Shown here in pieces: positions 23,052 through 63,749 of a DNA stretch of 64,000 nt (the first letter of the stretch is position 1; each line of letters opens with the position of its first letter). The notes under the pieces are model-generated. The model ran no database searches and was not told where the DNA came from. It was given only the letters and a program-made list of their open reading frames with translations. Origin of the DNA: Thalia democratica (Eukaryota). Both the position numbers and the translations under genes were made by a program. The stretch lies in contig OZ241826.1 in NCBI GenBank assembly GCA_965202585.1, positions 103,788,001 through 103,852,000 on the forward strand. Direction: 5' to 3'.

Positions 23052-26000
23052 ATGGCTTCTCCCATCACGAAACCCTGGCATGAATACACAGACGATGATG
23101 ATTTGCGTCCTTACCAAAATGAGGTTGCCGACGATCAAGCAGCTAGTTCTGTAGAAAGAAGTGCCAGTGGTGTGGCACACCAGCCTGTCGGTGTTGACGA
23201 CTGTGCTGGCCCTCAAGTTGATGCTCAGGCAAAAGCTCCACAGCCACCAAAAAGTGTGTGGAAAGTTATAAAGAAAACACCTGCTGTCGAAGCTAATGAG
23301 CAAGTTGAAGGTGGTGAAGATTCCCAGCAACAAGAACCTGATCAAGCTGATCAAGTTGACGGCAACTCTGCTGATGATGGAGACTGGAACTTAGTTATGA
23401 ATAATAAACATCAAAGAAAGAAGGAAAAGAATCCACCTAAGAACAACAAAAAGGAAAACCGTCGCCGCAGGATAAGAAATCCAAATGGTAATGGTTCTAA
23501 CCGTAATGGAGCCAACAGTAATGTTGCCAACGGTAGCCCCAAGAACCAAGGTGGTAAAACCAAGAACACAGGTGGTGGTAGTTCAAAAGACCAAGGTGCT
23601 TCCAATGTCGGAAAGAAAGAGGTGCAGGCAAGTGTTGAAGGTGAAGCAGCAGCTGAGGATATGAAACCGGTACCAGCTAGTCTACCTAAGACTAACCCTT
23701 GGGACATGAGTAGAATTGCACGTGCTCCACCATCTTCAGGTGCTGCTTCAACGAGCCGAGTTGTCGATGCTAGAAGTAACACTAACCAGAATGGACGCAG
23801 GCAGAGGAGAAGGAGGAGAAGGAACAACAAACACAAAAAGAAGGATGAAAACAAGGGTGATGAGAAGAAGGTGATTGTGGCAGAGGAGAAAGAAGTTGTC
23901 CAGAAGAAGTTTGTGGATGCTCCCCTACCAACAAAGAGCCCTTGGGCCAAACCTGCCGTACAAACAAGTGAGTTTAGACAATCTTTAAAATGTTTTTTTA
24001 TGAGTCAATTTTAAATAGTTTAGTAAAAATGTATCAATTTTTATATTTTTTTTAATTTACTTAGTTTTATTTTAATTTGTAGCTACTTCTTCTTCAGCCT
24101 CAATGCAACAATCTCCTTTAACATCAGCAAATGCAGGAAGTTTCAGGCCAACTCAAACCAGTTAGTTATAATTTCATATTTTTGGTTATTTATGATTGAT
24201 TAACAGTAGTTGTTTCAGTTTTTGGTAAGTTTTACTAGCATTTAAAAAAAATATTCCCATAAACTAATGTTGAAATGAAAGTATGATGTGACTCAAGCCA
24301 ATGTTTTTGATAAAAGAGTGGCAATCCTGACAAGCAGTCATTTTATTGGTTAATGTGATGTACATGTGTTTGCCGTAAATATGTTTTAATATTTCAAACT
24401 TTTTAGATGCTGCCGTCACCATTCAAACTAGTTCAAAAGATGCTGAACCCAATAAAGGGGTTAGTCATATTTATAAATATGTTTGATTTTAAAATGTAGG
24501 TTTCGATAAATAATTAAATAAAAAAATTTTTTTTAGTTTAAAAGAAATTTTATCTAACTAGTTTTTATAACTAATGAAAAAAAAATTATATACCTTTATT
24601 CATATTTTTCTATAATACAGTTTAAAACAAGTGTTTTACTAAATATGTTAGGTGGTCTCCTTTTTTTCATAGAACTACTTGCTAAATGTTTATTAGTATT
24701 TTAATATTGTTGTAAAAGTGACTTAATATTCAGTTTGAATTGTCTTCAAAATGTCTTTTTATACAATCACTTGAGTGCAAAATAATTTTTGAGACCTCAT
24801 AAAGTGTGACAAGCCTTTTTATTTCGTGGCTAGCTTCAAACTTTGAATTACCTCAAACAATGTGCAGGGGTTCCAAACAGTGGGTAGGAAGAAGAAAAAC
24901 AACAAGAGACCACCTGTTTCTTCAACAGCCAAAGTTGCAGCAAGGCCTGCCAGAAGAGAGGTGAGGAACCAGAAAGCAGCAGCAGTCACTTCAGCAAGAA
25001 GAGGTGGCTCAGGAGAGAAGGTGGCCAAAACTCAAGGAGGACGAGAACCAGCCCAAGGAGCAGGAAGCAGCACCGGGAAGCAGCAAAAAGCAGCAGCAAC
25101 AAAAGCAAGTGGAGCTCAGGGTTCAGCTTGGACAACAAAAGCAGCAACTCCAGTTGCATCAGCTACAAAGGTAGACATTTCATTTTTAAAAGTAGAATGT
25201 TTTACAAAACTTAGTATATTTAATTAAGTTTTGTTTTGATATCTATAAGGCTTGCTAAATTAATAAAAATTGTTATTAGAATTGCATTCCAGATTAATAC
25301 CTAATTTTAGTTGTCTTTGTGCTAATTGCAGTTGTAGTTGTAGTAAATAGCTATTTTACCAATAAACTATAATTAGTTGAATACCATTAGCTTGGATTAA
25401 AAAGTAGAACTGATTTAAAGTAAATTCTTTAATAAAATAAAAATTTATTGTACAACGTTTTGCTACAAGCGCATTTCAACTAGGCAAGAGTACTTAAAAT
25501 TTTTTATAACTAGCTTGTAGAATATTATTGTGCACAACATCTGTAGTTGTTTTAAACTAACTGTATTGTTGTAGGTAGCTGACAATTCCTCAACTTCAGC
25601 AGCTCCAACTTCACAAGAGGCTCAACCTAAGAAAGTTAGTATAAAGTTTATAAATAAGTGCTTATTTGCAATAAATTCAGAAAAAGTTTTTTACACTTGT
25701 TTTGTTTAGTGTTTTTAAGAGCTTTAAAATCTTAACAAATTTACAATTTATTTAGTTGGTTTTACATCATTTGTTAACAGCTTTTTGTTGAAATGTATTA
25801 ATGACAAACAAAAAGGCTTTGAATATTTGCAAAGACAAAGAATATCTAAAATTAAAGAAAATATACTGATATCTCAGGCTACTATAAAAAATGATTATAC
25901 AGTGTATACTTAAATTGAAAAGTGTTTGAGCTTTAAAATCAATTTCATGTTAGACTTTTAATTAATGCTTATTAAATGTGTTTATAAAATGATTAAAAGT

Positions 26001-29000
26001 ATTAATTTATTATATCAACTGAAAACTTCTTATTTACAGAAGTTCCAGAAGATGAAGTGCAATAAAAACAGAGAAGTCGTACCTGTTGGCAGCTCGGCAG
26101 GGTCAAGCTCTCAAGGAGTGAAGGAGACACAACAACAACAACAAGGAGCTGGGATCCAACAACAAGGAGCTGGAGTTAAACAACAAGGAGCTGGAGTTAA
26201 ACAACAAGGAGCTGGAGTTAAACAACAAGGAGCTGGAGTTAAACCACAAGGAGCTGGAGTTAAACAGCAAGGAGCTGGGATCCAACCACAAGGAGCTGGA
26301 GTTAAAAAACAAGGAGCTGGAGTTAAACAACAAGGAGCTGGAGTTAAAAAACAAGGAGCTGGAGTTAAACCTCAAGGAGCTGGAGTTAAACAACAAGGAG
26401 CTGGAGTTAAACAACAAGGAGCTGGAGTTAAACCACAAGGAGCTGGAGTTAAACAGCAAGGAGCTGGGATCCAACCACAAGGAGCTGGAGTTAAAAAACA
26501 AGGAGCTGGAGTTAAACAACAAGGAGCTGGAGTTGAACCACAAGGAGCTGGAGTTAAACAACAAGGAGCTGGAGTTAAACTACAAGGAGGTGCAGGCAGA
26601 CCAGCAACACAAGGCAATGTAGGGCGCACCAGAAAAGGTAATAGTAGCAGAAACTGTTTATTGTGAATAAACTTTCTTTCCCGCTTTGTTGTTTGCTTTT
26701 TTATGTAACATGAAGTACTTGTTTTAATCTAGTATTTCTTAGAATAAGAAGCATATATAAATATAGTTTTAACAGGCATGTTTGTTTGTCAAATCAGGTC
26801 ATAGAAAAAATGTTTTAATTTTGAAAGACCCCCATAAAAATAACTAATTTATTTTATTTTACTAGACTTATTAAGGAGATAATATAAGTAGACTATTTAT
26901 CCATGCTAAATAAAAGTGCATTTAATTAAAAAACTTCATTTGCAAGTTTAAGTAAAATTAAAGTTTAACTAAAATCACAGTTTCCCTTTTCATGACTAAT
27001 CAAACTGAAACTATTCTTTTTGCCAGACCTAAAATTTTAGCTATTATGTCCATAGACGTCCAGTATTTTAAAATAACTTTAGCTCCTATCCATTATCTCC
27101 GGCATGTATATACTTAAATTAATCATATTTTGTTTCATAGACAAAATGACCCTATTTAATCACCAGATTCTAGTGCAGGTTTTTCCAAAACTATATTTTG
27201 TTTCTAATCAACCCTCGGAAAAGTTCAAAAATCATTCGACCTTGTTTATTGGATATTTATCTTTTAAGCTTACTACCCATTTCACTTTCAAAGCCTTAAT
27301 GCGCTTAACAGCTCAAAACTGCCCACAAAGACGATATTTCCCTATTTGGGTTGCCAGTCTCTAGTGGCTAAGTCCATATTACATGTCAAACTAGGTACTG
27401 TCGTAAAGTTGCACACAACTGCTCACCCTATCAAAGCAGTCAACTAAAGCATATGCGGAAGTCCAGAGAAAATGTTCCTGAACTTTTGTATGCCGTAAGA
27501 CAAGCTCAAGCTTACATAAGGTCATGTCATACCAACTCGATCAGACCACAGGTTTCACGGTTGTGGCTGACTGATGAGTCCTAATAAGGACGAAACTGGT
27601 CTCAGTTTTCAGAAGGCTTGTGGTCCGACGATCGAGTTGGTGTGATCTAGTTTTATGTTAATATGAGCTTTTCTCATGGCATACGAAATTTCATAAACTT
27701 TTTTCTGAATTTTCGCCCATGTATTAGTTGGCTGCTTCTGATAAGTGAGCATGCAACTTTACTGGCATCTTAGTTTCATATTCCAAGTGACACAAGAACT
27801 TGGTTACCCAAGGTATAAAATATCGTCTTTGTAGGCAATCTTGTACAATTGAGCGCCTTAACTAGCAAGGCTTCAAAAAATAAATTGGTAGTAAGCTTTA
27901 GAAAGATGATTGTCTAATAAACTAGAAATATGTTTTTTGCACTTTTTCCAAGGGCTGATTATTAAAAAAAAAGTTTTGGGAAACCCTGTGCTAGAATCTA
28001 GTGACTTCAATGAGCAAAATAATATAATATAAAATACTGTACTTACATAAACCACCAAAAACCACGCCGAAGATTATGGGTATGGCAAAAAATATTTTTG
28101 AATATTGATCATTTATGGACATAATAAATTTACGTCCTGCACAATTTATGGTTTCAGTTTAACTAGTCATGGAAAAGTTGACTGATTTTAGTGAAACTTT
28201 AATCGTAATAATTTATATAAATTATGGATAAATGCATGTGTGCAACTTCACTAGGTACTTAAATTCATGAATCAAGTATACACAAGAACCAAAGTGTGAA
28301 ATATCCAAAGTGTGAAGTATCGTCTTTGTATCCTATTTAAAGCATGTACATTATGTGCACAGTTAACAAAAACTGAGTTGCACCGTCATAGAGTTCAGTT
28401 ATAATTGAAAAATGTTTAAAAAATTAAAACTAGTGATTTGTTTATTACCATTTAGACCATAATAAATTTTCTGCCTAAAAAACAAATCCATCTTTTGTTG
28501 TTTAAGGCAAAAAGTAAACGAAAATAAATAAAGAATATTTTGTATTTCTTTCAGCAGGGAGACAACAAACAAAAACAATTCTTCCAATTCAACCGCTCTC
28601 CTACATGGAAAGAAGAAGTGAGTCCGCTTGAACTTGCTTTTTGTAAACGATGTACAAGTTAACTGAAACACTTGACGATGTAAAATAAAACTTTTGTTCA
28701 GGATTGTTTTTAACTTGAACAGGAATGGAAAAGCAAAAGGAGCAAGGAGAAAGAAGTGCTCGCAACAACAATAACAACAGAGGGGCAAGAAACGGAAGAA
28801 ATGGAAACAGGAACATGAACAACAACAACAACAGGAGAGGAGGGGGGCGACATAGGCCACGTATGTTGTTCATGATTAATTAAACTTATAATTATTATAA
28901 AGTTATTATAAGTGGGTTTGACTTGAGTTTAGACTGCTTGTCAAACAAACCAAGAGAACTTATCAAGATGTTAGGCATTTAAAATAGGTTAAGTAACAAG

Positions 29001-32000
29001 TAAAAAATAATAGCGTTTTAGTTATTAAACCCAGTCTTTGAACAAATTCGAAAACTTATCAAATACTTGATATAACTTCCCTTACAGGAAACAACCAAGG
29101 CCGGCCTCGTAGAGAAAAAGGTTTTGGGGAGAGGCTGGTGTACCTCAGGGAGGACTTCTACAGAAAGCCCGAAATGGCTGGGTGTCGCAGAACGTGGATT
29201 AACAAAGATCACAACTTAGAGAATCAAAATTTCTTTTTGAGAGCGAGCATCAGCCCGTGCCCCAGCACGACCGAGGGTTCAGTTGCAAGCGAGGGTGAGT
29301 GGAGAGATTTGCAAAAATATAGCAGTTTAACAAGTCATGCAAAATTCTACAAGCAATTTAAAATTATGACTTAGTTTAATAAAATACCGGGAATCCTATA
29401 AATAATTTTGATTATTTTTATATCAAATACGAGTTGAAAACTTTTTTTTGGCATTTATCATTATCATAATTATATTCTCGCATTTATTATCTTACACATG
29501 TAATGTATCAGTCTGTAGCGTTGATGTGCTCTATAACAACTTTTAGCTGTCAAATCTTAGTTAACTCATTTTTGTTTGTTTTTGTATAATCATTTATTGT
29601 AACCCTGAAATAGGCTCTAACAACAGTGCAAATAACCCACCTTGTGATGATCCAAAATAGAATTACAACATTAAGCTTAAATTTTATTATAATAAACTTA
29701 TAGGCTCTCTTGATAACCCCTTTTTGGACAATCCACCTTACCCCATTGATAATCCCGAAGAGGTCGTCACCACAGGTCCGTTCGCCGGCTTCACCAGAAA
29801 GAAAATCTACCTTGCTAACAGATTGTTAGTTTAATTTTTGTTTACAAACCTTGGAAAAGCCATATGTAAAAAAGTTATCACATAGTTTATTCAAAGTTTT
29901 AAAGTTTCGTTTTTATTAGTTGCTTTGAACAAACGTGATTAGCGAGAACACATGACAAATAAAAATTCTAATTTAATTAAGTATATTTTTTTACAGCGGC
30001 TTCTGGTTTAGCCACAGAAATTTGGAAGTTTTAGACAATCGACACTTGAAAAGCTTGGTAAGTTTTCAAAACGTCAACACATTAATCATTTACTAAAAAA
30101 CTGTTTCAAGCTTTGGATAAAAAATTATGACAAATAAGTTACACAATTGTTTTTATTAAATTTGCATAAAAGGGTATCTAATTTTATTATCTATAAGGTA
30201 TAATAATTTTACTTAATAGTTTCTTATCTACATACCATACTAAAAAATAGTTTTGTATAAGTAAATCTGTTTTATTTATTTCGAAACTATAACCATTTTG
30301 AGTGTTACTTGTTAAATTTTTCAATAGTCGCTACTTCAAAATAAATTAAATAACTGTAACATTACTAAACACAACTATAACAAAACTAAATACAAATATA
30401 ACATATTAAATACAGCTATTACATCATTGACTACAACTATGACATAACTATTAACAACTGTTAAACCGCCAATTACCTCTATGACATAACTAAATACACT
30501 TTTTAATTAACCAAATACAACTACGACAAAACAAATACAGCTCTTACGTCACTAACTACAACTATGCATAAATAAAAGCAACTGTCAAATAACTAAATAC
30601 AACTGTTACGTCACAGATGGATCCTGAAGGGTACGTTCAATTGAGCGAAATGATGCACTTCCACACCTTCACAACTCACAACATAACCCGTCGCGAAGTT
30701 GTAGAGGTAGTTTGAAATAGTTTGTACCTGGTTTAAAAGCTAATGACAACCATAAACTTTATAAAAAGGAATAAAAATAACTATGATGCTATGTTTTTAG
30801 ATTTAGTTTTTAATATAATTTTTATAAAAAGCTGATTTTTTAAGCTACCTTTTAATATTATCGTTTTAATGTTTTGTGTTAAAAAATATAGAAAAGTTTA
30901 CGTAACTTTACTATGATACTTTGTATAACTCCGTTATCTTCTATCAGCTTAGTTTAGTACTAGTTTCTAACAACTAAACGAATGTAGTTATTGCAATCGC
31001 GACTGCTACGTAACCGTGTTGATTTTGATTCTGTCAACGAAAGAGTGAGATGCATCTACAGGAACGGCATTAATTTCACACTAAACAACCATCAGTTGGA
31101 AGTTATATATAGGAAAAACATCACCACTGGTGAACAACTCATCACAGAGCCAATTTACGGTTTGATAGGGAAATAGCTTACAATATATAGTATTTAAAAT
31201 GCACTCTAAAACTTTTTGTAATTAATGTAATACTTAAAATTCAATTTAAAACGTTCTCGATTGTTTGATAATGTTTAGAAGTCAGTTATCCTGGTTGCAA
31301 GTTTTTTCTTTCAGTGGTTGACAGTAGATTGTAGGTTTATTGAGTTCAAGAAAAAGTAAACTAGATGAAGGTTTTTATTTATATATTTACAGGGAAAATC
31401 CAACCGTTCGTCGAAGGAGTTCAAGTGTACTGGGACGCTTATTATTGGCGTGGCGCAGTTTACTACTTGTCGGCCCATTTTCCCAACAATGGAAGATTAA
31501 GCCAATATGATGTCAGTTGGCTGTACGACGACCTACAGGATGATGCTGTTGAACAAGACCAGTTGAATGAAGAAGTTCTCGTTCAACGTGATATGGTTCA
31601 ACCAGAACAGACTGCTGGTTCTGATCAAGGTTTACTTGCCAGTTATGAGATATTAAAAGTTTTAAACAACAAAATATTTCAAGATATAACGTTAATTTTT
31701 ATTAGTGTTTTTGAATTTTAAACTTAAGTTACAAAAGTACAATATAATAATAAAGAAGTATCATAAGTTAATACTTGTTAATTTATCAAAAAACTTATAC
31801 CAACACATCAAAACATACTAAATTTTCAGTAGGCAATCTTCAAGAAAGTGGTGCACAGTCTCAAGCAACCAGCCAGCAAGATAAGGATACCCAACAAGAC
31901 CATGAGACCAAAGCTATGCAGGAGGTAAACGAGGATGAAGCTGAAAAAGCTAACCATGGTAAGAATATGTCAAGTACATAAAAGTAATTCATACCAACAA

Positions 32001-32614
32001 CTTTTAAATTGCTCATTTAATTTATCAATTAATAGTAATTAACGATTTTGAATTTTAAACTTAAGTTACAAAAGTTCAATATAATAATAAATAAGAGTCA
32101 TAAGTTAAAACTTTTTAATTAATTTTAAATCTTATACCAACACATCAAAGCATACTACGTTTTCAGTGGGCAATCTTCAAGAGAGTGGTGCACAGTCTCA
32201 AGCAACCAGCCAGCAAGATAAGGATCCCCAACAAGACCAGGAGACCAAAGCTATGCAGGTGGTAAACGAGGATGAAGCTGAAAATGCTACCCATGGTAAG
32301 AATATGTTAAGTGCATAGAAGTTATTCATATCTACAACTTTTAATTTGCTCATTTAATTACTAAACATAAGTGTGATCGTTTAGTCATGAAAACAACAAT
32401 TTCAGAGTGCAGCATGGGTGCAAGTGAAGAGCAGGAGGAGCAGCAGGATCAGGTGCAGAATGGTGCAAGTGAAGAGCAGGAGGAGCAGCAGGATCAGGTG
32501 CAGGATGGTGCAAGTGAAGAGCAGGAGGAGCAGCAGGATCAGATGCAGGATGGTGCAAGTGAAGAGCAGGAGGAGCAGCAGGATCAGGTGCAAGATGGTG
32601 CCAGTGAACAATAG
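23052..32614 (+). CDS. Gene A: divergent La-motif (LARP1-related) low-complexity protein, ~1186 aa, 17 coding exons: 23052-23967, 24083-24160, 24407-24459, 24868-25170, 25575-25634, 26040-26637, 28558-28617, 28723-28860, 29088-29294, 29704-29824, 29997-30057, 30617-30706, 30988-31159, 31393-31629, 31830-31958, 32167-32295, 32406-32614
   Basis: GC-richer exons with AG/GT boundaries splice to one open frame of 3561 nt (divisible by 3). It contains KIYLANRFGFWFSHRNLEVLDNRHLKSLMDPEGYVQLSEMMHF (La-motif pattern xxFSxxNLxxDxxLxxxMDxxGxV) and FVDAPLPTKSPW (compare LARP1 FVEAPPPKVNPW). Splice choices are manual; NAGNAG alternatives exist at 26040 and 28555/28558. Confidence 0.8.
26142..26586 (+). repeat. 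Coding 21-bp minisatellite, 21 copies of QGAG(V/I)(K/Q/E)x in gene A exon 6
   Basis: Unit CAAGGAGCTGGAGTTAAACAA; seen in ORF 25965-26666. Confidence 0.9.
26895..28233. repeat. Large imperfect inverted repeat (arms ~650 bp) inside gene A intron 6
   Basis: Nested exact reverse-complement blocks: 26895-26904/28224-28233, 26968-26977/28183-28192, 27043-27054/28114-28125, 27165-27173/27991-27999, 27266-27277/27887-27898, 27325-27339/27818-27832, 27403-27413/27752-27762, 27531-27542/27630-27641, 27544-27550/27619-27625. Confidence 0.9.
27565..27607 (+). ncRNA. Minimal type I hammerhead ribozyme; predicted cleavage after GTC at 27601
   Basis: Stem I GGCTGA(27565-70)/TCAGTT(27602-07); core CTGATGA (27571-77); stem II GTCC-TAATAA-GGAC; GAAA (27592-95); very short stem III AC-TG-GT followed by C. 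All invariant core nucleotides are present. Confidence 0.9.
31710..32370 (+). repeat. Tandem duplication (~337-bp unit) of a 129-nt exon with flanking intron
   Basis: TTGAATTTTAAACTTAAGTTACAAAAG at ~31711 and ~32048; exons VGNLQESGAQSQATSQQDKD(T/P)QQD(H/Q)ETKAMQ(E/V)VNEDEAE are near-identical. Confidence 0.9.
32416..32611 (+). repeat. Coding 45-bp repeat (GASEEQEEQQDQVQD, 4 copies plus a partial) ending gene A
   Basis: ORF 32387-32614 translation; unit GGTGCAAGTGAAGAGCAGGAGGAGCAGCAGGATCAGGTGCAGGAT. Confidence 0.9.
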
Positions 32615-33828: not shown

Positions 33829-34450
33829 TAGCTATTAAGCGCCACCTAGCAACTGTTTTGTATGAACAAAAATAGTTCCCTTTAAAATTAATACGCGCAT
33901 AATATTATGACACGTAGCTCGTCATGCATGAATGCACTCGTGACTCAACAGAAATAGAAAGCGCGCATAATTCAAGAAAGTTCTACCTAGCTATTTAGCG
34001 CCACTTAGTTACTGTTTTGTATGCACAAAAAATTGTTCCCTTTAAGATTCAACCGCGCAAAAATGATGAAACATAGCTCGTCAAGAATGAATGCACTCAT
34101 GATGCTATAGAAGTCGAAAGCGCGCATTATTCAAAAAATTTTTACCTAGCTATTAAGCGCCACGTAGTTACAAAAATAGTTCCCTTTAATATTCAACCGC
34201 GCACAAAATGATGAAACATAGCTCGTCATGAATGAATGCACTCATGACGCAATAGAAGTCGAAAGCGCGCAAAGTTCAAAAAAATTCTACCTAGCTATTA
34301 AGTGCCACATAATTACTGTTTTGTATGCACAAGAAATAGTTCCTTTTTAAAATTAATACGCGCACAATATTATGACACGTGGCTCGTCATGCATGATTGC
34401 ACTCTTGACGCAACAGAAGTCGAAAGCGCATTATTCAACAAAATTCTACC
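33829..34450. repeat. Four-copy tandem array of a ~159-bp CpG-rich unit
   Basis: TAGCTATT(A/T)AG(C/T)GCCAC at 33829, 33988, 34147, 34292; shared GCTCGTCA, ATGCACTC and GAAAGCGC blocks. Confidence 0.9.
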
Positions 34451-36728
34451 ATTGTTTCTCATTATTACTAGTTAGTTAATTTCTGTCTCAAAATACTTCT
34501 TTATAAATGATTATTTTCCAAATTAAAAACAATAGTAAGAATTGAAGCAATTTTCTACAAACAAAGCAATGTATTGTTTAAGTAATGTTTTATCTACCAT
34601 TCTTTCTCATTATTGTTTGTTTGTAATTTCCGTCCCAGACATATTTCCTGATAAACAAACGTTTTTCCAAATTAGCATAATAATAAAAGTAATATCGAAG
34701 TACTTATCAAAACAATGTTAAATATAAAATAGTTTTTTTAGTAAATTAGCCTCAATGAACAAACAAATTAAAAAAACACTTTTAGTAGTTTAAAAACATG
34801 CTTACTTTCTTAAAAGTGAAATATAACGGTTCATATTATGTCATATGTTTTATCTATTGGAACATAATTGTGTACCAAGAGTTATGCTAATTTTTTTTTC
34901 TAAACACATACATAAAATTATTTCAGAAAACACTTTTTAAATTTTTTAAACAGTTTCACTGTCATAGTAATCAACTTTAAGATGAGATCATTAAGATTTG
35001 TGTCTAAAATGTAAATTAAGTGCCTAAATCTTTTTAAAAGTATTTGTGTTTATATTTATAGACTAAGTTTTTACTGTAGTTATATCTTAACTTACACTAT
35101 AAAAAAACCTTTGTAGTCATTGTTTATAAGTTGTAAGACAACTTGAAGTTTTATTATTGGTAATTTTAATGTGTTATTATTCGCATTATAAAGTATCTAG
35201 ATTTAATGTTTTTATTGTATAATAAATTAGAAATAGTAAAGTTTATTTAAAAAAATTCACTAAAAACTGTTTTTATAAAACAATAGCTTGTAGTTCTATC
35301 TACAAAGAAATTTTAAATTAACATATAAACAAAAAGCTCGTTAACGCTTTACCAAAATTAAATTTACTTTAAAGTAAAATATAATTAAAAAGTTTTTAAA
35401 CGAGGTGAAACTAAATAATAATTTTTAGTGAAACTAACCTCCAAAGATTTTCTTAAAATTTGGCAATCAACTTCAAGATTTTAAAACTAAGTTTTTGTGT
35501 CATTAGAAAAAAAATTCAGAAAGCTTGTTAAATTTAATCGCCTTTAATTACTCATCTTTTAATTACAGTCTTCGTTAAAATTTACATTATTCAAATTACT
35601 AAAACTAAAGTTATTAGGATTGGTAAGCAACAACTGTTGAAACGCCAACATACTTAGCTAGAAATAAAAAATAAATTAAAAATAATATTGTTAGCTTATA
35701 ATGGTGAACACGTCCTCGCGAACAATGCCAAAATTAAAGTAAGTATATTGTATTAAACACTTGAATAAAAAAAGTTTAAACTCCAAAATAGCTGAAGTTC
35801 AAAGACCATACGCCTGTTTGTTGTTTGTTCTAGTTAGCATATAACAAGGCTTATTGAAGAGACGGTACGGCAATACTAAAACATAACGCTTCAATTTACA
35901 ATTTTAACTTCTTTTTAATCTTCTACTGAACATTAACGAAGGACACTGCCGGATCCGGTCATAACTTGCAAAGACCTGGATCTTATTAAAACTATGTTTT
36001 AAAAAAACACTTGCACCCGTCCATATTTGATCAAGAACTGCTTGACTTAGGTTTTAAATAATGGTACTTCCGAATGAACGTAAATCTAGTTCGAACTTCA
36101 GAATATGGCAAAATTTTTCATAAATAATAATAGTCATACTATATTTTGGTTAAACTTTATGCTAAACTTTGTCTTATCCAAAACCTTAATCTAAACTTAT
36201 TGCCAATCAGAACCAGATAGGACCATTTCAATCAAATCTAAGTAAGCCTAGGTAATTTTATTTTGAAAAATTTCGTAAATGCATTTAAAACCCAATAGTC
36301 TACTTGAAAAAAAAACTTCAAATGCTAAAGTTGTTATTAAATTTGTTTAAAAAATTTTTTACGATGAAGTTTTTTTAAAAACGAAATGTTTTTTGAAAAT
36401 GCTATCCAGATAGTTACTAACTTTAAATATTCTTTACTCGAGCAATCTCTATTTAAAACCAGCGTGAGTAAAAGTTTATTTGTTCTGCAGGTAAAACTTT
36501 TAGAAACTAATATATATAAACTAAAAAGCCGTTAGAATTACTTTAAACTTTTTGAACTATTATTAAGTGCATATAAAAAAAAAAAAAGTTCTTTCTTATA
36601 CAGAATTCGAAAGAAAAAAACTAAAACTACGTGTGAAATAATTATATAAGTCTACATTAATTACAATAAAAGTTTTTTTTTTCTAAATAAAAGAAATAAT
36701 AAGAAAGGCTATATTTAAGTAAATTAAT

Positions 36729-37654
36729 ATGTCTGAATTGGAAATAAAAAGTATCATTGAAAACTGCAAAGTTAGTAAAGCAACAAAGGAAAGTTTGCTA
36801 CAACTAGGAAGAAAAAATGATGCAAAATTTCAATCAATGGAAAAAGAAATCCATAACTTGAAAAGTCAGTATAAACTAAAATCAAGGAACTTGAAATCAG
36901 TATCCAGAATACACAAAAAACTCATGAGGAGGTTTACAAGAAACAAACTACAGAAAAGTCTCTTGATCACTAAATCAGTTCACTAAATGAAAGTTTTATG
37001 AAATTTAAAACAGAGTTCTGCAAAAAGTTTGATAATTTTGAAAAGAAACTTTCAATGTATGCAGAAGCATCAACAAACTCCTTTCAAAAACAACCAGACT
37101 TTATCAGTAACATTGACAGTAAGTTGTCACTAGTAAGGAATCAAATAAATGCTGAAACTGAAAGGAAATTGAAAGAAAAAAAAACTTTAAATGTCATAGT
37201 ATTTAATATTCCCAAAAACATTAGCAATACATCAGTTTATACGGTAGAAAATGCAAAAAATGACCTCAATAAAATACAAAGTTCTTTAGGTTCCAACGAG
37301 ATAGCTGAAACTGAATTAAATATATTATACTGTATTGGTAAATACAACTGCAATAAAACGAGACCAATAATTTTGAAACTACTCACACAATCTAGCAGAA
37401 AACGACTATTGAGTCTAAGAAACCTTAAAATACAGCATCTGGGTAAACAAATTAGTATCTACATTAATATTATTAATATTGATCGAACAAAATCAGAGAT
37501 GGAACGTTTTAGAAAATTGAGATTTGAACTAAAACAAAAACAAGCAGAAGCTGAAAGTAAAAGTTTGAACATAAGATACGTTATAAAACAAAACAAAATA
37601 GTCGAAAGTACTCAACTGCCCTTTCGGTTTAACGCCCAGGATCTCAGGGCCTAA
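36729..37654 (+). pseudogene. Disrupted ORF1 of a CR1/L2-type LINE
   Basis: Two consecutive ORFs (85 and 218 aa): coiled-coil-like start, then NVIVFNIP, RPIILKL and DRTKSEMERFRKLRFELKQ, directly upstream of a LINE endonuclease. Confidence 0.7.
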
Positions 37655-37774
37655 TAAGTCAAGCTTTAACACTGACATGCACCTTAAATCATCTAGTTTA
37701 ATCATTTATGGTTCTAATACTTAGGCCTCAGGCACTGTTTTTTCTAATAGTTTAACCTCTAGTAGAGGTTTATT

Positions 37775-52729: not shown

Positions 52730-54050
52730 ATCTATCCAGCTCTACTCACACTCAGTTTAAGAGACCAAATGCAATCAGTCTAAAAAAAGTATAATAATCA
52801 ACTCGAAGATATAAGTTTAATTAATGGTACGTAAAGATTAAGCTTAATATTTTTCTGATTGTCTTTTAAGTAAATTATCTCTCAGTTCATTTTAAAATGC
52901 TCCAAGATAGCTTTGATCTTTTAAGTTTCTAGGCAATTCATCCCACAGTTTACAACCAAAGTAGGATAATGACTTAAGACCATAAAGACTTTTTACTCTG
53001 GGAAAATAATAGTTTGTTTCTGAAAATCTTGTTAGATGATTATTTATTTTATTAACATTTGTAAAGTAAGGCTTAAAACTAGTTAATTATATATCTATTT
53101 TGAATATGTTCATAAAATTCCATAATAATATTGGAACATATTATCAGTATCTAATATTTTCTTTTTTTTTATTTTGTTAACATTTTTCTATTTTTAAAGT
53201 GTATAGGTTTTATTGCTTTGTTTATAAGTCTGTTAATCTCATTAATTTTATCTTTATTGGCCTTGCCCCAGCAAAGCAAACCATACCTTACGTAGCTCAT
53301 TAAAAGTGAATTGAAGATATAATACAAAGCAATTTTGTTTAAATAGTTCTCGTTTTATACAGAACAACTATTGATTTTAAAATTAGTTTTTAAACTTTCT
53401 ACATGCCCAGTCCAATTTAGATTACAATATATTGTAATACCTGAATACTTGTAATTATTTACCTTTTTTATAAAAGATTCATATCTTAATATATAAAGTT
53501 AATTTTTTCTAATAAACTCTTTTAATTAAATGAATTAACATGCATTTTGTTTTATCAATATTCAGTTTAAGTATATTATTCTTTAATAATTTTATATATT
53601 TTCAAGTTCTGAATTAAGGTATGCAGTGTCTGTTTTGTAATTGTTCTTTTATTAAATGTGGTATATAATAGTGTATCGTCTGCGAAAATTAAATACTTTT
53701 AGACTGGTGTTGTTTTGTAGATCATTTATATATACGAAAAGCATTAGTCCTAACAAAGAACCCTGTGGAACTCCCACTTCTACACCCTCCCAGTCCTATT
53801 CATGCCCTCCAAAATTAACAAATCTTTTTTATTCAGTTAATTATGATTTATTAACTTATGCAATTTTTCATTTATCTAAATATATTCTAACTTGTCAAAG
53901 AAAATCGTTCTGTCAACACAGTCGAAAGCCTTGTTAAGATCTAATAAAACAGCACAAACTTCATTTTCCTTATCAAAGGAGGACAATGTACTTTCCACAA
54001 ACTCTGACAGAGCTAATGTAAGAGAATGTCCCTTCATAAATCATTAAGAA
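52730..54050 (-). mobile_element. 5'-truncated, decayed CR1/L2-type LINE (RT and C-terminus)
   Basis: The minus strand reads CAVLLDLNKAFDCVD, VGVPQGSLLGLMLFVYINDL, (frameshift) FADDT, and GLKSLSYFGCKLWDELP. Boundaries approximate. Confidence 0.9.
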
Positions 54051-54334
54051 AGATTAAATTAAAGGTATCAAACTTAATTCTTTGTCTTCTAAGCTCTTTG
54101 ATCTGAGCTTCTTGTATTGAACAATAAAGCAATGTTCTTGGTCTTCTGAACTCTTTAATATTTAATGACTTAAGGAAAAACTTTTTAATACTTTGCTTTA
54201 TTTCTCAAAAATCTACATTTGCTTCGTTATATCAGGACTTTTCTCCAATTTTTTTTAAACCAATGTAAATGAAAGTTATAAACGATCCATTAAGACATTT
54301 AGCTTTGAAACTTTATTTACGACCATTGATGAAC

Positions 54335-56975
54335 TTGATAGGTCATGATTACTCGTGGGAGTAGCAAGTTTAATCGGTTAACTTGGTTAGACATACCCAC
54401 TAAAGTGAGTAGCAAGTTTAATCAGTCAACTTAAACTTTGTGGGTCATTTTTACTCGACTGAGTATCAAATTTAATCAGTAAATTTGAACTGGTTGGTCA
54501 TTATTACTCGACTGAGTATCAAGTTTAATCAGTAAACTTGAACTTGGTGGGTCATGATTACTCGAGTGAGTAACAAGATCAATCATTTAACTTGAACATG
54601 TTTAGACATGATTATTCGAGTGAGTAGCAAGTTAAATCGGTTAACTTGAACTCGATTGGTCATGATAATTTGTGTGAGTAGCAAGTTTAATCGGTAAACA
54701 TGAACTGGAGGGTCATGATTATTCGAGTGAGTAGCAAGTTTAATTAGTAAACATTAACTTGGTGGGTCATAAATACTCAGGTGAGTAGCAAGTTTAACCG
54801 ATTAACTTGAACTTAGTGGGTCATGATTATTCGATTGTTTAACAGGTTTAATCAATTAAATTAAACTTGGTGGGTTTTGATAACTTAAGTGAGTAGCAAG
54901 TTTAATAGGTAACTTGAACTTGATGGGTCATATTAACTCCAATGAGTAACAAGTTTAATCGGTTAATTTGAATATGGTGGTTCTTGATTACTTGAGTGTA
55001 TACAAATTTTATAGGTTGTCTTGAACTTGGTAGGTCATACACACTTAAGTGGATAGCAAGTTTAATCAGTTAACTTGAACTTGGAGGATCATGATTACTT
55101 GAGTGAGTAGCAAATTTAATCGGTTAATTTAACTTGATGGGTCATAATTACTCGAGTGAATAGCAAGTTTAACCGAATAACTTGAACTTAGTGGGTCATG
55201 ATTATTCGAGTGTGTAGCAAGTTTAATCAATTAAATTAAACTTGGTGGGTTTTGATAACTTAAGTGAGTAACAAGTTTAATCGGTTAACTTGAATTTGGT
55301 GGTTCTTGATTACTTGAGTGTATTTAAATTTTATAGGTTGTCTTGAACTTGGTAGGTCATGATTATTAGAGTAAATATTAAGTTTTTCCCGTTAACTTGT
55401 ACTTGGTTGGTCATGATTATTTAAGTGAATAGCAAGTTTAATTGGTTAATTTGATCTTGATGGGTCTTGATTACTAGGGTAAAAAGTAAGTTTTACCCGT
55501 TTACTTAAATTTGGTGAGTCATTATTACTCGATTGATTAGTAAGTTTAATAGGTTAAATCTGTACTTCTGAATTTGGGTTCTGCGGAATCCTAGAGTACC
55601 ACAACGCCTCTCAGGGGTTCCGCGAAGCCTTTCGAAATTTAAAAAAGAAATTTGAAAAAAAAAAAATATAAATAATAAAACTTCAAAAAAAATGAAACAT
55701 ATAAAATGGAAAACAAATATAATTATAGCATACATTGATCTTCTTATAATGCAAGGAATGATTTTTATGAAATTGCGATTAATCATGCTTGTTTTTGATT
55801 ATTTATTATAGTATCATAAAATACCTATTGCCTCTCGCGCACTTTGAGTTTAACTCGACTTTATTACAATTAGTATGATTTCTAACAATGATAAAGTTTT
55901 GTTAAAAAATTCGTTTTTTCTAAAATTCTTTTGTTTTTTTTGCAGGATATAGTATATTAAACAATTAAAGTAAAATTAAATTAGAGGCTCCGCGGAATAA
56001 TTGAACTTTGGAAAAGGGTTCTGCCACTAGAAAAAGGTTCAAAAGCGCTGGTTTAAATTGAACTTGGTTGGTCATGATTACTCGAGTGAGTAGCAAGACT
56101 AATCGGTTAACTTAAAATTGGTGGGTCTTGATAACTTGAGTGACTAGCAAGTTTAATCGGTTAACTTGTACTTGATGGGTCATGATTACTCGAGTGAGTA
56201 GCATGCTTGATCGTTAATTTAACTTAGTGGGTCTTGATTACTTGAGTGAGTAACAAGACCAATCAGTTAACTTGAACTTGCTGGGTAATGATTACTTGAC
56301 TGAGTAGCAAGTTTAATCTTTTAAATTTATCTTGCTGCGTCATTATTACTCTATTGAGTAACAAGTTTAATCAGTTAACTTTAACTTGGTGGGTCATGAT
56401 TACTCGACTGAGTAACAAGTTTATTCGGTTAATTTGAATTTGGTCTTTCATGATTACTCATATAAGTAAGAAGTTTAAAGGGTTAAATTGAACTTGGTGG
56501 GTCATGATTACTCGAGTGAGTAACAAGTTTAATCGGTTAACTTGAACTTGGTTGGTCATGATTATTCAAGTAAGTAGCAAGTTTAATCAGTTAACTTGAA
56601 CTTGGTGGTTCATAATTACTAAAGTGAGTAGCAAGTTTTATCGGTTAACTAGAACTTTAAAGGTCATAATTACTCGAGTGAGTAGCAAGTTGTATCAGTT
56701 AACTTGAACTTTTTTGCTCATGATTTCTCGAGTGAATAGCAATTTTAATCGGTTGATTTAAACTTTTATGCTCATGATTTCTCGAGTGAGTAACAAGTTT
56801 AACCGGTTAAGATAAACTTGTTTGTTCTTGATTACTCGAGTTAGTCGCAAGTTTAATCGGTTAACATAAACTTGGTGGGTCATGATTAATCGAGTGAGTA
56901 GCAAGTTTAACCGGTTAACTTGAACTTGTTGGGTCATGATTACTCGATTGAGTAGCAAGTTTATTCGATTAACTT
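54335..56975. repeat. 54-bp satellite (GAACTTGGTGGGTCATGATTACTCGAGTGAGTAGCAAGTTTAATCGGTTAACTT), roughly 40 units in two blocks
   Basis: Continuous head-to-tail diverged units at 54335-55559 and 56051-56975. Unit count estimated from length/54. Confidence 0.95.
55560..56050. mobile_element. hAT-like MITE inserted in the 54-bp satellite
   Basis: Ends CTGTACTTCTGAA... and ...TTCAAAAGCGCTG; internal GGTTC(T/C)GCG motifs; 8-bp flanks GGTTAAAT / GTTTAAAT (7/8 match); satellite phase resumes after the insert. Confidence 0.75.
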
Positions 56976-57959: not shown

Positions 57960-60900
57960 TTATGCTTGATTTTCTTGGGCATCATTGACAACTTCTTCGA
58001 CATCATTGGCAACTTCTTGGTCACCATTGGCAACTTCTTCGTCATCATTGGCAACTTCTTGGGCATCATTGGCAACTTCTTGGGCATCATTGGCAACTTC
58101 TTGGTCACCATTGGCAACTTCTTGGGCATCATTGGCAACTTCTTGGTCACCATTGGCAACTTCTTGGGCATCATTGGCAACTCGCTCCGCATTCGCATAC
58201 GCTTCCCTGATGTTCAGGTTTCTCGCTGCATCACTGACATTATCGTTGATACCACGGCGCAGTTGATTATGCCTGTGCCCTACAATTACAAACAAAGTTG
58301 TTTAACTTGTAGTTATAATCAGAAAATAAATACATAAGTATAATCAGTTCCTTTGTATTGTTAGATTAAGAAGTAAATTTTCAAGTGAGGATATGTAATA
58401 TTAAATAATAGTTGGTTGAGTGTGTGTTAACTTTTAATTACATGCTACTGTCATAAGCTTTAAGTCAGTCTTAGAAAAATTACCAATATATTATGATAAG
58501 ATATATATTAACTCTTTTAAATATGAATGTCAACATTTATTTTAACTTTACAACTAATTACAAAAACAAATGTATTTATATTATATACTACATCATTTGA
58601 CCAACTACAATTAACTAGAACTTCTTATAACTTAGTAATATAAAATAATTTTAGTAAACAAACAATCAGCATTCAACAACTGACCGTAAACTGTGTTGTT
58701 GACGAGTTGGTTACCAGTTTGAATGTTGTTCATGATGTATTCATGCTGGACGTTGTTTGTGGTAAGATTGATTCCCTCCACAATCAAACTTCCAACCCTA
58801 TCAATGTGCGGGTAGTATTTTACTCTGGACTTGTCGGACCTCAAAAACTGTATAAAAAATATGTTTGAAAGTTTTTAGACTTATAAAGTAGTGACAGTTA
58901 GTCTTACGTTAAACTAAACTAACTTTTTTTTTCTATAATAATTCGGATCACTCTATAAATAAAATTTTTTTTGAAAATGCAAGGCAAAATTCAATTAAAA
59001 GTTTACACGATCTTTTCGTTAGATTTACTAAATTTAGGTATTATTTTATAGATACTAGAAGTTATGTATAAAAACTATAATTCACTTTTTTTTTAAACTT
59101 TTACAATTGGAAGTTTCTAAAACAATCTCATTTTTTAAAACACTAAGAAGAAAAATTTTCAGAACATATTTAAAATGTATCATCAAAAATTCCATAGAAA
59201 GTACAAAAAAGCAGTGGTAACCATCAGAATTAATTGACTAGTATGAATGGAAGAAAATCACATTTAACAGTTAACTTGTTTCAAAGTAAGTAAAAAGCAC
59301 CATACCTGTTCTAGATCATCACGAGTAATGTGGTTGCTTACCATCGATGGGAATTGAAGGAGTTCGTCAAGCGCGACCCGCCCTTCATTATCCATCTGTT
59401 GGTAAGTTAAAACATTTATTTTTGCGACGTTAATAATTTCATAATAATATTTGAAAGACGTTTGATTTAATTTTATTAGTTTACCTTTAAGATTTTTTAG
59501 CACACACTTTGAAATAAACTATTTATTTCTAATAATTTTTTAAGAATAATCATTTTAATCATTCTAAAACTTAAATTTTTAACTTTTAATTGTTTTTATG
59601 GAAATTTTCATTTTTCAAGTTACATTAAGTAAATGAACTAATAAAAAACTTAAACTTTTAGATATTATGGGTTTCTAAATTCTTATACAAGTTATATTAC
59701 ATAACAAAACACTATTTTAAAAAACTGTTTACAAAATAAATATTACCTTGCTTCGTAGATTCGTGTCTTTTTTGTTATTGAGATTGTAGTTACTGAACCA
59801 GAAACCACTGCAAAATATAAAAATTTGTTATTAAAATTTATAAAACCTTAAATAAATACGTTTGTAGTTCTACTAACATTTCAATTAACCGGCTAAAACT
59901 AATAAAAACTAAAAGGTCTCAAATTTAAGTAAAATCATTTTGAAAAAATTGTCTTAGAATTTACAAAACTCCTAAATTAGTAGATAAAAAGCATTACTAT
60001 GGTTTAGCGATTTCCTACTATTTATTAACATTTAGTACTACTGTGTTCAAAGTTTTTATTTGAATATGAAGTTTGATAATAACAGTAAAAGTTTAATTAT
60101 TAACTTACGTCTTATTGGCTATGAACATTTCCATGTTTGTCCATCTAGCAAAGAAGCCGCTATGAACTACACCATCGGCGGGTTGCACCATACTCGGGTT
60201 TTCCCAAAATTTCTTCGTATCTTTTAATTAATAAATGATTAGAAAAAGACTGTTTACAAAAATTTTAAAAATTTCAACGTTTAATTAAAATACAACTACT
60301 TTTAAAGAGCTTTCGAGTTTACAATGTGTAAATAAATAAAAAAGTTGTTATGAGTTAGTTTTAAAAATGCGAACGTACCGAATTTAACGCTAGTACTTTG
60401 CTGTCCAGCTCCTGATGCTTCCCTTCTGGACTGTGTAGCTTGACCTCTTGCTTGCGGTAAAGCTATTAAAACGCTGGTTGTAATAGTTTTGCTCTGTGGG
60501 ATCCTTTGAGTACCGCTGTTTGGTGGTGGCATCATTTGAATACCGCTGTTTGGTGGTGGCACCATTTGAATACCTCTGTTTGGTGGTGCCATCTGAGGGC
60601 ATCTGCCTCGGGGCACCATTTGAATACCTCCGTTTGTAGGTGCCATCTGAGGGTATCTGCCATGGGGCACCATTTGAATACCTCCGTTTGGTTGTGCCAT
60701 TTGAGGGTATCTGACTTGGGGCACCATTTGATGACTTCTGTTTTGAGGTATGAATGGATGCTGAGTGTTGTAAGGCATAACTTGTGCCTGCTGGTTATAA
60801 TGTGCTGGAGGTAGATTAGGATAGTACTCTCTGTTATACAGATTGTAAAACATATGAGGCATTTGCCCGTACGGTTGCATCATCGGGTTAGTGTTTATTT

Positions 60901-63749
60901 GCGTGGCGGTATTTTGGTGCTGGACCCTTTGGTTTCTCAATACCTGCTGTTGTTGCTGGTTACCCCTAAAATTGTCAAAATTGCTGGGATGCTGCTGTCT
61001 ATTATCTTGACGTTGAGGATTTTGCTGCTGTCCAGCACCGTGGTTGTTTCCTCCTTTTTGAAATGGTAATTTTAAAGTTTTCACTTAAGTTTACAACTAA
61101 GTTTCTTTTAAAACTTATTAGTTTCTTTTTCAAAAAGTACTAACATTCAGATAACTTATTACATGTTTAGAAACAAAATTCTACTGAAATTATGTTTTTT
61201 TAAGTTTAAGAAATATAATGTTTTTGAGTATGAATATATTTTCGGATTATAAGCGCGTGTTGAGTAATAAACTGAACAAACCGTGTCCGTTGTTGTTATT
61301 TCTACCGCGTGCACTCCAAGGAGAACCATTTTGGTTGTTTTGACCTCCACCACGGTTTCGACCACCGTTGTTAGGAGAGTTGCCATTATTGTTGCGATGT
61401 CCTTGCTGCCTTTGATCTAAGTGATTAATCAAAACTAGTTGAAAATATAAAGTAAAAGCAATCCCAAGATACTTTTAATTAATAAATAATTATTTTTTCT
61501 ATATAATAAGTTTAGGTAGAATTCAAAACTAATAAAATTTTACAAAGACTGATTTTGTATTTTTAATCAACTATATACGGTTGTAAAAATGACTTAATAT
61601 TTTAGGTTTTTAAATTAGAACCAAATGAAAATATAAACTTATGAAGGAGACGTACGATTTTAACTAATTAACTTATGTCTTCTCTCCTCCCCATAGGAAA
61701 GAACATCAATTTGCAGAATTTGATGAACATTATTTTAATTTGATTATATTGTGTAAAGTTCTCTTTAAAACATGTGATTACAACAAACCTCTGTTGTTTC
61801 CTCTCCTCGAAGTTTGCTGAGAACCTCTGGAAGCTTGTGTGGATCTTGATCCGTTGGAGCGCTAAAAGTAAGATATGTATAAAACATTCTTGTAGTTTTT
61901 AGAAATATAAAAAGTGATCATAAATTTAAATATTGAAGCAGTTTTCAGTTTGAAAACTAATAAATCATAAAATTGATCAATAAAAAAATGCAAAAAAAAG
62001 GTTTACTTCACTAATCTAAAATATACAAAATACTGCTTTATTAAAGAATTTGTTATCATGAATGTCTTTATTACTTAATATTTTTTTTAAAACTAACAGA
62101 GTCGACTTCATGATTATTATCTGCTTCAATTGAGGGTGAAACGCCAGCAGAGGTACCTAAAATTTATAAAAATAAGTACTACTACACTTCCTTACTTTTA
62201 TATTGATTTTTTATTAGATATAGTTTATAGTGCATAATATTCTACACTATTTGTTAATTTTTTAACCAAAGAGAAATCGATGCTAAACTAGTTATAAAAA
62301 TTTAAAAATTCCAACTTGGTAAAGCGGATTGGTTTCTTTCTGGGATATTCTCGGGTTGCGCTCTTTGGGCTTGGTTCCTACCACCACCATTGCCTCTCTT
62401 ACCGCCATTACCGCCCCTTCCTCTGTAATTTCCTCTTCCTCTGTAATTTCCTCTTCCCCTGTAATTTCCTCTTCCCCTGTTTCTGTTTCCTCTGTTATTA
62501 CCAGCATTTTCATGTTGGGGGGCGTTGTTGCGATTGAGGGTAACATCTGAATTACTAGGAAGCCCAACGGAGTAACCTAAATATTATAAAAATATAAAAA
62601 AAACAACATTTTTAAAATTTTACATTACTTTTGTATTATAAATAATTTTTGCTATAATATGTTATTTGATAATGTTGTGTTGATTAATAAACTCAAACCT
62701 GGCTGAGCTGATTGGTTTCTTTGTGGGACATTCTCGGGTTGCACTCTTTGGTTTCCGCCACCTCTGCCAAATGCGCCTCTCTGACCACCTCTACCACCTC
62801 TTTGACCACCCCTTCCTCTATTTCCTCTGATGTTCCCAGCATTCTGCTGCTGCTGGGTCTGTGCCCTGGCCTGATCTTGAGAAATCTGCTCAAATGTAAC
62901 TGGATTCTCGGGTTTTGGCACTGGTCCCCAAGCAGATGTTGTCGGCGGCGGGGCTTCAATGAATCGACAAACCTCCTGATGCTCCTCCTGAGTCGCCTCA
63001 TTGTTGTCTACAGGATGAGGTTGAGCAACGGAAGCACCTTCTTCTGCGCCTCCTTCCGAACCGCTGCGTGCACCATTGTTCGCGTTCCCACCTCTCCCAG
63101 GGCGACGACGTTTGTTCTTCCCTCTGTTGTTACGTCCTTTTTGTGGAGATGCGCCTCCTTCACGCCCACCACTGCTCGCTTGCCTTTCATCACCACCCAT
63201 TTCGCTCCACAGTTTCTTCGGCCCTTCCTGGACCTGAGGAGCGTTGTTGAGAGTTCCAGCTGAACTAGCAGGGTGTCCTGCAGAGGTACCTGAAATTTAA
63301 AAGAATAAGTACAACTTATTACATTAACTATATTTATAAAAAAAAAGTACACCTTATTAAATTTACTATATCTATAAAAAAAAGTACAACTTAACATTAA
63401 TTATACCTCTAAAAAACATATGCTAAAATATTAAAGATGAGATCTATACCAAATTAGTATTTTAGAATGATTAAAAAATCAAACTTGGCTGTGCGAATTG
63501 GTTATCTTGTGGGACATTTTCGGGTCGGGATCCAAAGTTTTCACCATCTCTTCCCCTGTTTTCTCTTGAATTCCGAACATCCTCCTTAACTTGAGGAGCG
63601 TTGTTGTGACTGAGGGTACCACCTGAATTAGGAGGGAGTCCTCCCGCTTCAGCCAGAAGAGCACCCTCAGCTTCAACTGTCTTTGCAGGGTGCTCTGGCT
63701 TGTTTTCAACCACTTCTGTACGCTCAACCTCGTCTCCGATAGAATCCGC
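57960..63749 (-). CDS. Gene B (5'-incomplete): divergent La-motif (LARP1-related) RGG/prion-like protein, paralog of gene A; exons 63749-63485, 63289-62699, 62576-62316, 62156-62098, 61861-61789, 61416-61282, 61053-60379, 60220-60109, 59807-59747, 59395-59306, 58847-58685, 58279-57960
   Basis: Exons with AG/GT boundaries splice to one open frame of 2805 nt (divisible by 3). It contains MFIANKTGFWFSNYNLNNKKDTNLRSKMDNEGRVALDELLQF (compare LARP1 [22 protein letters not shown]) and FIEAPPPTTSAW. No ATG at the first visible exon. Confidence 0.8.
57972..58181 (-). repeat. Coding 21-bp repeat (VANDAQE, 10 copies) ending gene B
   Basis: ORF 57960-58295 translation. Confidence 0.9.

Follow-up and report, generated by a model that had tools for sequence, protein, structure and literature searches.

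LARP1 is the central regulator of ribosomal-protein mRNA translation and of poly(A) protection, and the role of its La motif in the absence of the DM15 domain is studied chiefly through the short-form LARP1s of yeast and plants. These DM15-less or 'solo La motif' proteins include Slf1p and Sro9p of Saccharomyces cerevisiae, Slr1p of Schizosaccharomyces pombe and LARP1b/c of Arabidopsis (PMC7928011, PMC12645190). Two independent origins are recognized for them, in Dikarya and in angiosperms, and animals are not mentioned in Deragon's survey or in a 2025 review (PMC7928011, PMC12645190). A text search of the literature for the LARP1 La motif together with cnidarians found no paper mentioning cnidarians. 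The stretch analyzed here comprises 64,000 nt of the Thalia democratica genome (assembly GCA_965202585.1, contig OZ241826.1, positions 103,788,001-103,852,000 of the forward strand) and is referred to below as the window. It carries two genes, A and B, which are probably old paralogues in convergent orientation and members of a short-form LARP1 family, fast-evolving and lineage-restricted, of this marine invertebrate. Within the published literature and the protein libraries searched, the family appears to be undescribed.

Each of the two proteins consists of a long, basic N-terminal region of low hydrophobicity with a LARP1 motif, a core of about 145 aa, a module of about 30 aa and an acidic repeat tail. 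As in the described short forms, a La motif of apparent LARP1 type is the sole conserved part that would be folded and bind RNA, with neither DM15 nor a recognizable RRM, and it lies near the C-terminus behind a long, poorly conserved N-terminal region. The features that define a short-form LARP1, a La motif as the sole domain, located near the C-terminus and without DM15, are thus found in both A and B. The described short forms likewise occur as duplicated paralogues, and several fungal LARP1-like sequences carry the N-terminal motif too, in the form A-P-x-P-x-V-N-P-W. Unlike the described short forms, A and B are animal genes. Their La motif is also far more diverged, with an insertion after N-L and changes in the RNA-binding pocket, whereas that of the fungal short forms is canonical and scores 70-80 Pfam bits. 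To the parts known from fungi and plants they add the post-La module and acidic repeat tails, and gene A has a further conserved segment as well.

Full-length animal LARP1 and LARP1B (PF05383 plus PF21071) share with A and B an N-terminal motif of the F-V-E-A-P-P-P-K-V-N-P-W type, an Arg/Gly-rich stretch upstream of the La motif, a La motif without a canonical RRM and the positions of La-motif introns. In contrast to full-length LARP1, A and B have no DM15/LARP1_HEAT, no match to CR1 or CR2 and no PAM2, and an extra phase-0 intron splits their La exon; the La motif scores 14-25 bits in A and B, compared with about 75-80 bits in full-length LARP1. A precedent for a La motif that has lost most of its primary-sequence conservation, as in A and B, is the LARP7-like protein Pof8 of S. 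pombe, in which the motif is recognizable only by structure (PMC7928011). Pof8 nevertheless belongs to a different subfamily, is defined by an xRRM2 that is absent from A and B, and is a telomerase cofactor, and nothing in A or B suggests a role in telomerase.

The two genes and their shared core

The window is AT-rich animal DNA (27% GC), and sequence related to it is present in marine metagenomes. The exons of both genes were reconstructed by manual choice of splice sites, and the pieces were joined by script. Gene A has 15 exons on the forward strand (23052-32614), reads from an ATG at 23052 to a stop and would encode 1146 aa. Gene B has at least 12 exons on the reverse strand (63749-57960) and would encode at least 934 aa. 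All introns in both genes are GT-AG, and each gene forms one open frame, of 3441 nt over 15 exons in A and 2805 nt over 12 exons in B. The GC fraction is 0.47 in the exons and 0.27 in the introns of gene A, and 0.48 and 0.21, respectively, in gene B. The reconstructed exons are as follows.

23052-23967, 24083-24160, 24407-24459, 24868-25170, 26040-26637, 28723-28860, 29088-29294, 29704-29824, forward strand: gene A exons 1-8
29997-30057, 30617-30706, 30988-31159, 31393-31629, 31830-31958, 32167-32295, 32406-32614 (stop), forward strand: gene A exons 9-15
63749-63485, 63289-62699, 62576-62316, 62156-62098, 61861-61789, 61416-61282, reverse strand: gene B exons 1-6
61053-60379, 60220-60109, 59807-59747, 59395-59306, 58847-58685, 58279-57960 (stop), reverse strand: gene B exons 7-12

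A first-pass annotation of this DNA had described two genes pointing toward each other about 25 kb apart, and this arrangement was recovered: the genes are convergent, and their stops, ending at 32614 (A) and 57960 (B), are separated by 25.3 kb. The outer limit that it had given on the side of gene B, 63749, is not the start of the gene but an internal acceptor (63750/63749) of an exon without an ATG. The 5' end of gene B is therefore missing from the model, which has no start codon, and the first exon or exons lie beyond the window edge or within 63750-64000.

Comparison of the spliced proteins by blastp gave a single match, between residues 771-913 of A and 691-829 of B (143 aa, 37.8% identity, E = 1.4e-24). 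The paralogy of A and B is far beyond chance. The absence of any other significant match agrees with the earlier description of the pair as unalignable outside about 150 aa. All four La-region peptides quoted in that description lie where it placed them, at 29721-29822 on the forward and 60209-60111 on the reverse strand. The exon sizes given for this region (121/61/90/172 nt in A and 112/61/90/163 nt in B) and the intron phases common to both genes (1-2-0-0-1) were likewise reproduced. The hydrophobic content is 0.35-0.37 in the core and 0.10-0.17 elsewhere in the two proteins, in keeping with the proposal of a small folded-type core inside long disordered regions. The cores are located as follows.

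29704-31159, forward strand: gene A core, exons 8-11, with a diverged La motif at about aa 801-878 followed by a family-specific module of about 30 aa (GINFTLNN...EPIYG)
58685-60220, reverse strand: gene B core, exons 8-11, with a diverged La motif at about aa 720-795 followed by the post-La module

The La motif is distributed over three to four exons and ends about 270 aa from the C-terminus in A and about 140 aa from it in B. Comparison of the post-La module with the post-La region of animal LARP1 by hhalign showed no similarity, and a word-index search with exon 11 returned no candidate. Directly before La helix 1, both paralogues have a short F-[LW]-[DE]-N-P element and a V-V-x-x-G-x-F-A stretch (29706-29822, forward strand; 60111-60218, reverse strand), for which no LARP1 counterpart was found.

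The reference set used to assess the identity of the core was collected with a degenerate nucleotide pattern encoding E-Y-Y-F-S-x-x-N-L-x-x-D-x-[FY]-L, which gave 120 metagenome stretches and 118 open frames with a clear La motif; a search of viral contigs for a La pattern gave nothing. The ten frames checked against Pfam matched PF05383 at 68-84 bits, three of them also matching LARP1_HEAT, one SUZ-C and one both RRM_1 and RRM_3. A profile of 69 non-redundant motifs from the metagenome set scored 20.2 bits on the whole spliced protein B and 14.3 bits on A. On 96-aa segments the scores rose to 25.3 (B) and 19.7 bits (A), compared with 9.6 and 13.2 bits for the best of 2000 shuffles each. When the profile was applied to the six-frame translation of the whole window (3599 segments), exon 10 of B ranked first (E = 0.0094) and exon 10 of A second (E = 0.056). 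When the A/B pair was aligned to the La alignment by hhalign, a match of 96.3% probability (E = 1.9e-9) was obtained over 74 columns, which extend from helix 1 up to the closing V-R; in this alignment, G-F-W-F-S-x-x-N-L of A and B stands opposite E-Y-Y-F-S-x-x-N-L of La. The La motif of the first-pass annotation is thus significant by profile search and by profile-profile comparison. As judged by these comparisons, the core motif is homologous to La, but strongly diverged.

In human LARP1, Q333, Y336, Y337, D346, F348, F367 and H368 serve to hold the two terminal nucleotides of the RNA and its 3' hydroxyl, and the affinity without Q333 is 20-50 fold lower (PMC11259064). In the hhalign register, the corresponding residues are R, F, W, N, H, F and H in A and K, F, W, D, N, F and P in B. 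The aromatic platform and F367 are kept in both proteins, while the Gln and F348 are changed in both and the Asp is changed in A; in addition, both motifs have a two-residue insertion after N-L. The pocket of human LARP1 is thus retained only in part. Because of this partial retention, canonical recognition of the 3' end is probably weakened or changed, and more so in gene A.

Some observations weigh against reading A and B as short-form LARP1s, and those on the motif itself would suit a core that is another winged helix or an unrelated fold, such as a Tpt1/KptA-type N-terminal domain, with a likeness to La that is due to chance or convergence. The scores of 14-25 bits, which for the spliced proteins come from our own profile only, would miss the Pfam cut-off of 37.1 bits. 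A Pfam search of ten single exons gave no La match and only matches at noise level. Exon 10 of A and of B faintly resembles the Tpt1/KptA winged helix (PTS_2-RNA, E = 0.04 and 0.14), a profile search of the PDB with exon 10 returned only spurious EF-hand matches to troponin C, and roughly half of the canonical pocket positions are substituted. Nevertheless, the profile and profile-profile matches span the whole motif with the F-W-F-S-x-x-N-L signature in register, and shuffled sequences fall short of the observed scores. The likeness to Tpt1/KptA (PF01885) is limited to 28 residues of exon 10 and scores less than the 26 bits of the cut-off; none of the other exons shows it, and a catalytic domain is absent downstream. 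In addition, neither the N-terminal LARP1 motif nor the intron positions described below depend on the La-motif sequence. A core unrelated to La is accordingly regarded as very unlikely.

Probable relationship to LARP1

An N-terminal LARP1 motif had been named in the first-pass annotation, and it proved to be real. Of 120 animal LARP1 proteins retrieved with a validated LARP1 frame, 100 had enough N-terminus to be examined, and the motif [FY][VI]xAPxPKxNPW was present in 69 of these, 220-300 residues ahead of the La motif; the primate form is RRDFVEAPPPKVNPWTKNA. In the metagenome set it occurred in 14 of 32 LARP1-type frames and in none of ten others. A profile built from 59 animal LARP1 proteins matched A strongly and B weakly. 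Gene A exon 1 was the sole significant match among the 3599 segments of the window (E = 4.7e-5). The matches are as follows.

23910-23945, forward strand: LARP1-type N-terminal motif of gene A, FVDAPLPTKSPW, aa 287-298; profile match over aa 278-313, 18.2 bits
23670-23702, forward strand: second copy in gene A, VPASLPKTNPW, aa 207-217; profile match over aa 207-229, 12.7 bits
62928-62963, reverse strand: degenerate N-terminal motif of gene B, FIEAPPPTTSAW, aa 198-209 of the model; 6.1 bits, followed by RGG/GRG repeats

The introns of the La region provide a second link. In 21 of 50 LARP1-type contigs, both animal-like and fungal-like, a phase-2 intron lies one base ahead of the Glu codon of EYYFS, recognized as a pyrimidine-rich interruption of the frame that ends in AG and is followed by one base and then this codon. 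Among 49 LARP4-like, LARP6-like and other contigs, a sample in which non-LARP1 genomic contigs are few, no true case was seen, the AG match in contig L082 being continuous coding sequence. Exon 9 of both A and B begins in phase 2, one base ahead of the Gly codon that aligns to the Glu of EYYFS. Four animal LARP1 contigs (L035, L037, L084 and L091) have a phase-0 donor 48-50 codons after the EYYFS intron; exons 9 and 10 of A and B have a combined length of 50 codons and a phase-0 end, matching this donor. One additional phase-0 intron, before M-D, is present in A and B. The profile matches to the N-terminal motif and the LARP1-type intron positions support the LARP1 origin that had been proposed for the pair.

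Full-length LARP1 of metazoans and fungi characteristically has GR repeats on the N-terminal side of its La motif (PMC7928011). In gene B, exons 2-3 contain 16 RGG/GRG/RGN sites, and gene A has two RGG sites and an Arg/Gly/Asn-rich stretch that ends about 95 aa upstream of the La motif. This richness in Arg and Gly is a compositional trait and by itself weak evidence.

Several points about placement also count against LARP1 ancestry, and those from the tree and the subfamily profiles would be compatible with an origin from LARP4, LARP6, LARP7 or genuine La. The maximum-likelihood tree of La motifs groups A with B as sisters (99/97), and the stem of the pair, 1.97 changes/site long, joins an unresolved polytomy. 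Profiles of the La-motif subfamilies score A and B much alike and do not discriminate between them, the LARP4-like and 'other' profiles coming nearly as high as the LARP1-like one, and the N-terminal motif of gene B, taken alone, is weak at 6.1 bits. Since neither the tree nor the subfamily profiles place the pair, the case for LARP1 descent is made by its N-terminal motif, introns and architecture. The motif was found only in LARP1-type proteins, in the metagenome frames as in the animal sample, and the phase-2 intron before EYYFS only in LARP1-type contigs; no RRM, PAM2, SUZ-C or LSA was found in A or B. An origin from another branch of the La superfamily is quite unlikely in the light of these features.

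The genes had also been described as lacking DM15, and both frames do end shortly after the core. A DM15 profile made from five validated LARP1 sequences found nothing in the six-frame translation of the whole window (3599 segments); its best match had an E value of 0.74 at 7 bits. The in-frame stops are reached through consistent phase-1 splices, before any DM15. With a profile of full-length animal LARP1 built from 33 sequences, matches to A and B are confined to profile positions 23-415, which take in the N-terminal part together with the beginning of the La motif; CR1 (the ribosome-binding region) and CR2 gave no match to A or B with this profile, and a regular expression for PAM2 found none in either protein.

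The N-terminal motif and the order of the parts would also fit an ordinary full-length orthologue of LARP1 (or LARP4), with DM15 or RRM exons located further downstream of one or both genes. This explanation is largely refuted by the stops in exons reached by consistent splices, by the lack of DM15 in the 64 kb and by the failure of the full-length profile to match anything past the start of the La motif. Furthermore, with a stem of about 2 changes/site, the La motif of A and B is more diverged than that of any sampled LARP1. Ordinary orthology is thus extremely improbable.

Selection and repeat structure

Three sequencing runs over the locus (X1-X3) were found to be genomic DNA, because introns and exons are evenly covered and splice joints are lacking, and this is a further point against the short-form reading. 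A fourth run (X5) contains next to none of the window. An exhaustive phmmer search with gene A exon 1 against 1.8 billion representatives returned a single relative, an open reading frame (ORF) fragment from a marine metagenome, and no full-length spliced protein. The relative lies on a 2.5-kb Tara Oceans contig (L001) that aligns to 22606-24951 with 85-89% DNA identity. Exon 1 and the portion of exon 4 that the contig covers contain ten indels, each with a length divisible by three; none of the 11 indels in the flank and introns has such a length. This contig also preserves the start codon of gene A together with six splice sites (three donors, three acceptors), and the ratio of nonsynonymous to synonymous substitution rates (dN/dS) in exon 1 is 0.49. 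For exon 12, relatives (P0122-P0124 and L122-L125) were found as ORF fragments on four further marine-metagenome contigs, with 68-79% amino-acid identity and dN/dS values of 0.23 and 0.43.

These tests covered exons 1 and 12 of gene A, the only one of the two genes with orthologous contigs. From the frame-preserving indels, the conserved start and splice sites and dN/dS of 0.23-0.49, gene A is judged to be a selected coding gene with fast-evolving disordered parts. The fast evolution had been anticipated in the first-pass annotation, and the dN/dS of the N-terminal exon and its many in-frame indels bear this out. Gene B is suggested to be a real gene by its long open frame, canonical splice sites and conserved core.

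Decaying or unexpressed relics, with open frames that have persisted by chance, would be compatible with the lack of RNA evidence for the models, and exons 1 and 12 of gene A are barely more conserved in DNA than the flanking introns. Contig L125 (316-609; 1.9x coverage) has an in-frame stop at a conserved Trp of exon 12, which may reflect a sequencing error, a null allele or, in that population, a copy undergoing decay. Nevertheless, open frames of 3441 and 2805 nt over 15 and 12 exons are maintained in a genome of 27% GC, where stops are frequent. The indels preserve the frame in exons only, dN/dS stays at 0.23-0.49, the splice sites are conserved and the contrast in GC between exons and introns is strong. 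Hence it is most improbable that the pair are pseudogenes.

The low-complexity regions and exon 12 contain the following features.

26137-26589, forward strand: heptad repeat QGAGVKQ in gene A exon 5, 21.6 copies of a 21-nt unit with 89% matches (Tandem Repeats Finder)
31393-31629, forward strand: gene A exon 12, a conserved hydrophobic segment of 79 aa with no counterpart in gene B
31830-32614, forward strand: acidic Q/E/D-rich tail of gene A, exons 13-15; exon 15 has 4.6 copies of a 45-nt unit, then the stop
57972-58182, reverse strand: C-terminal acidic repeat EVANDAQ of gene B, 10 copies of a 21-nt unit directly before the stop

Exons 13 and 14 of gene A form a 337-nt tandem duplication that includes the intron (31709-32359; 91% identical). 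The orthologous contigs L122-L125 appear to be single-copy for this unit, and the duplication therefore looks recent. Gene B also has a Q/P/M/Y-rich stretch. Its exons 1-3 (63749-62316, reverse strand) share a terminal peptide, P-E-N-[VI]-P-x-x-N-Q-x-A-x-P, followed by the donor GTTTGA or GTTGGA; this common ending suggests that gene B's N-terminal region may have grown by exon duplication.

Exon 12 of gene A gave no match in Pfam and no sequence match in the PDB, and the ESM Atlas returned only bacterial hypothetical proteins, with recognition under the useful range. A Tudor-like barrel was considered for this segment and dropped, because two low-confidence AlphaFold models contradict each other, one having three strands and a helix (predicted local distance difference test score, pLDDT, 56.8) and the other being all helical (pLDDT 49.4).

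Proposed origin and genomic surroundings

The likely origin of the family is that a full-length animal LARP1 lost its C-terminal half and was then duplicated. By analogy with the yeast short forms Slf1p and Sro9p, the proteins would be cytoplasmic and mRNA-binding. Both the altered La motif and the disordered Arg/Gly-rich regions would take part in RNA contact. A role as a multivalent scaffold of messenger ribonucleoproteins (mRNPs) or condensates, along the lines proposed in the first-pass annotation, is plausible because of the long low-complexity, repeat-rich regions. Function is assigned by analogy throughout, and this too tells against the short-form reading.

A bolder proposal is that an animal lineage independently made a DM15-less LARP1 in which a La motif without canonical 3'-end recognition became the compact structured hub of fast-evolving, repeat-rich scaffolds for an RNA granule specific to that lineage. 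This is rather unlikely. If true, it would represent a third independent origin of short-form LARP1 and a new binding mode. As for the short-form reading, a duplicated animal short form whose 3'-end pocket is partly rewired would amount to a natural experiment on which La-motif residues are dispensable, and would illustrate the reuse of an RNA-binding core within fast-evolving disordered proteins. A practical warning follows for annotation: such genes would be invisible to domain searches, because their single exons are unmatched and the spliced motif is probably below the Pfam cut-off.

No Rfam family was matched at gathering scores in the whole window, and the intergenic DNA between A and B held no further exons of interest. 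The 22 kb on the 5' side of gene A (1-22000 of the window) have 21-27% GC, no open frame longer than 101 aa and no recognizable gene. The remaining features lie between the two genes.

36700-40100, forward strand: decayed retrotransposon of the non-long-terminal-repeat type, with ORF1-like, endonuclease-like and reverse-transcriptase fragments interrupted by stops
53200-54050, reverse strand: second reverse-transcriptase fragment, on the strand opposite to the first
54330-56975: satellite shortly beyond the stop of gene B, about 49 copies of a 54-nt unit with a higher-order period of 215

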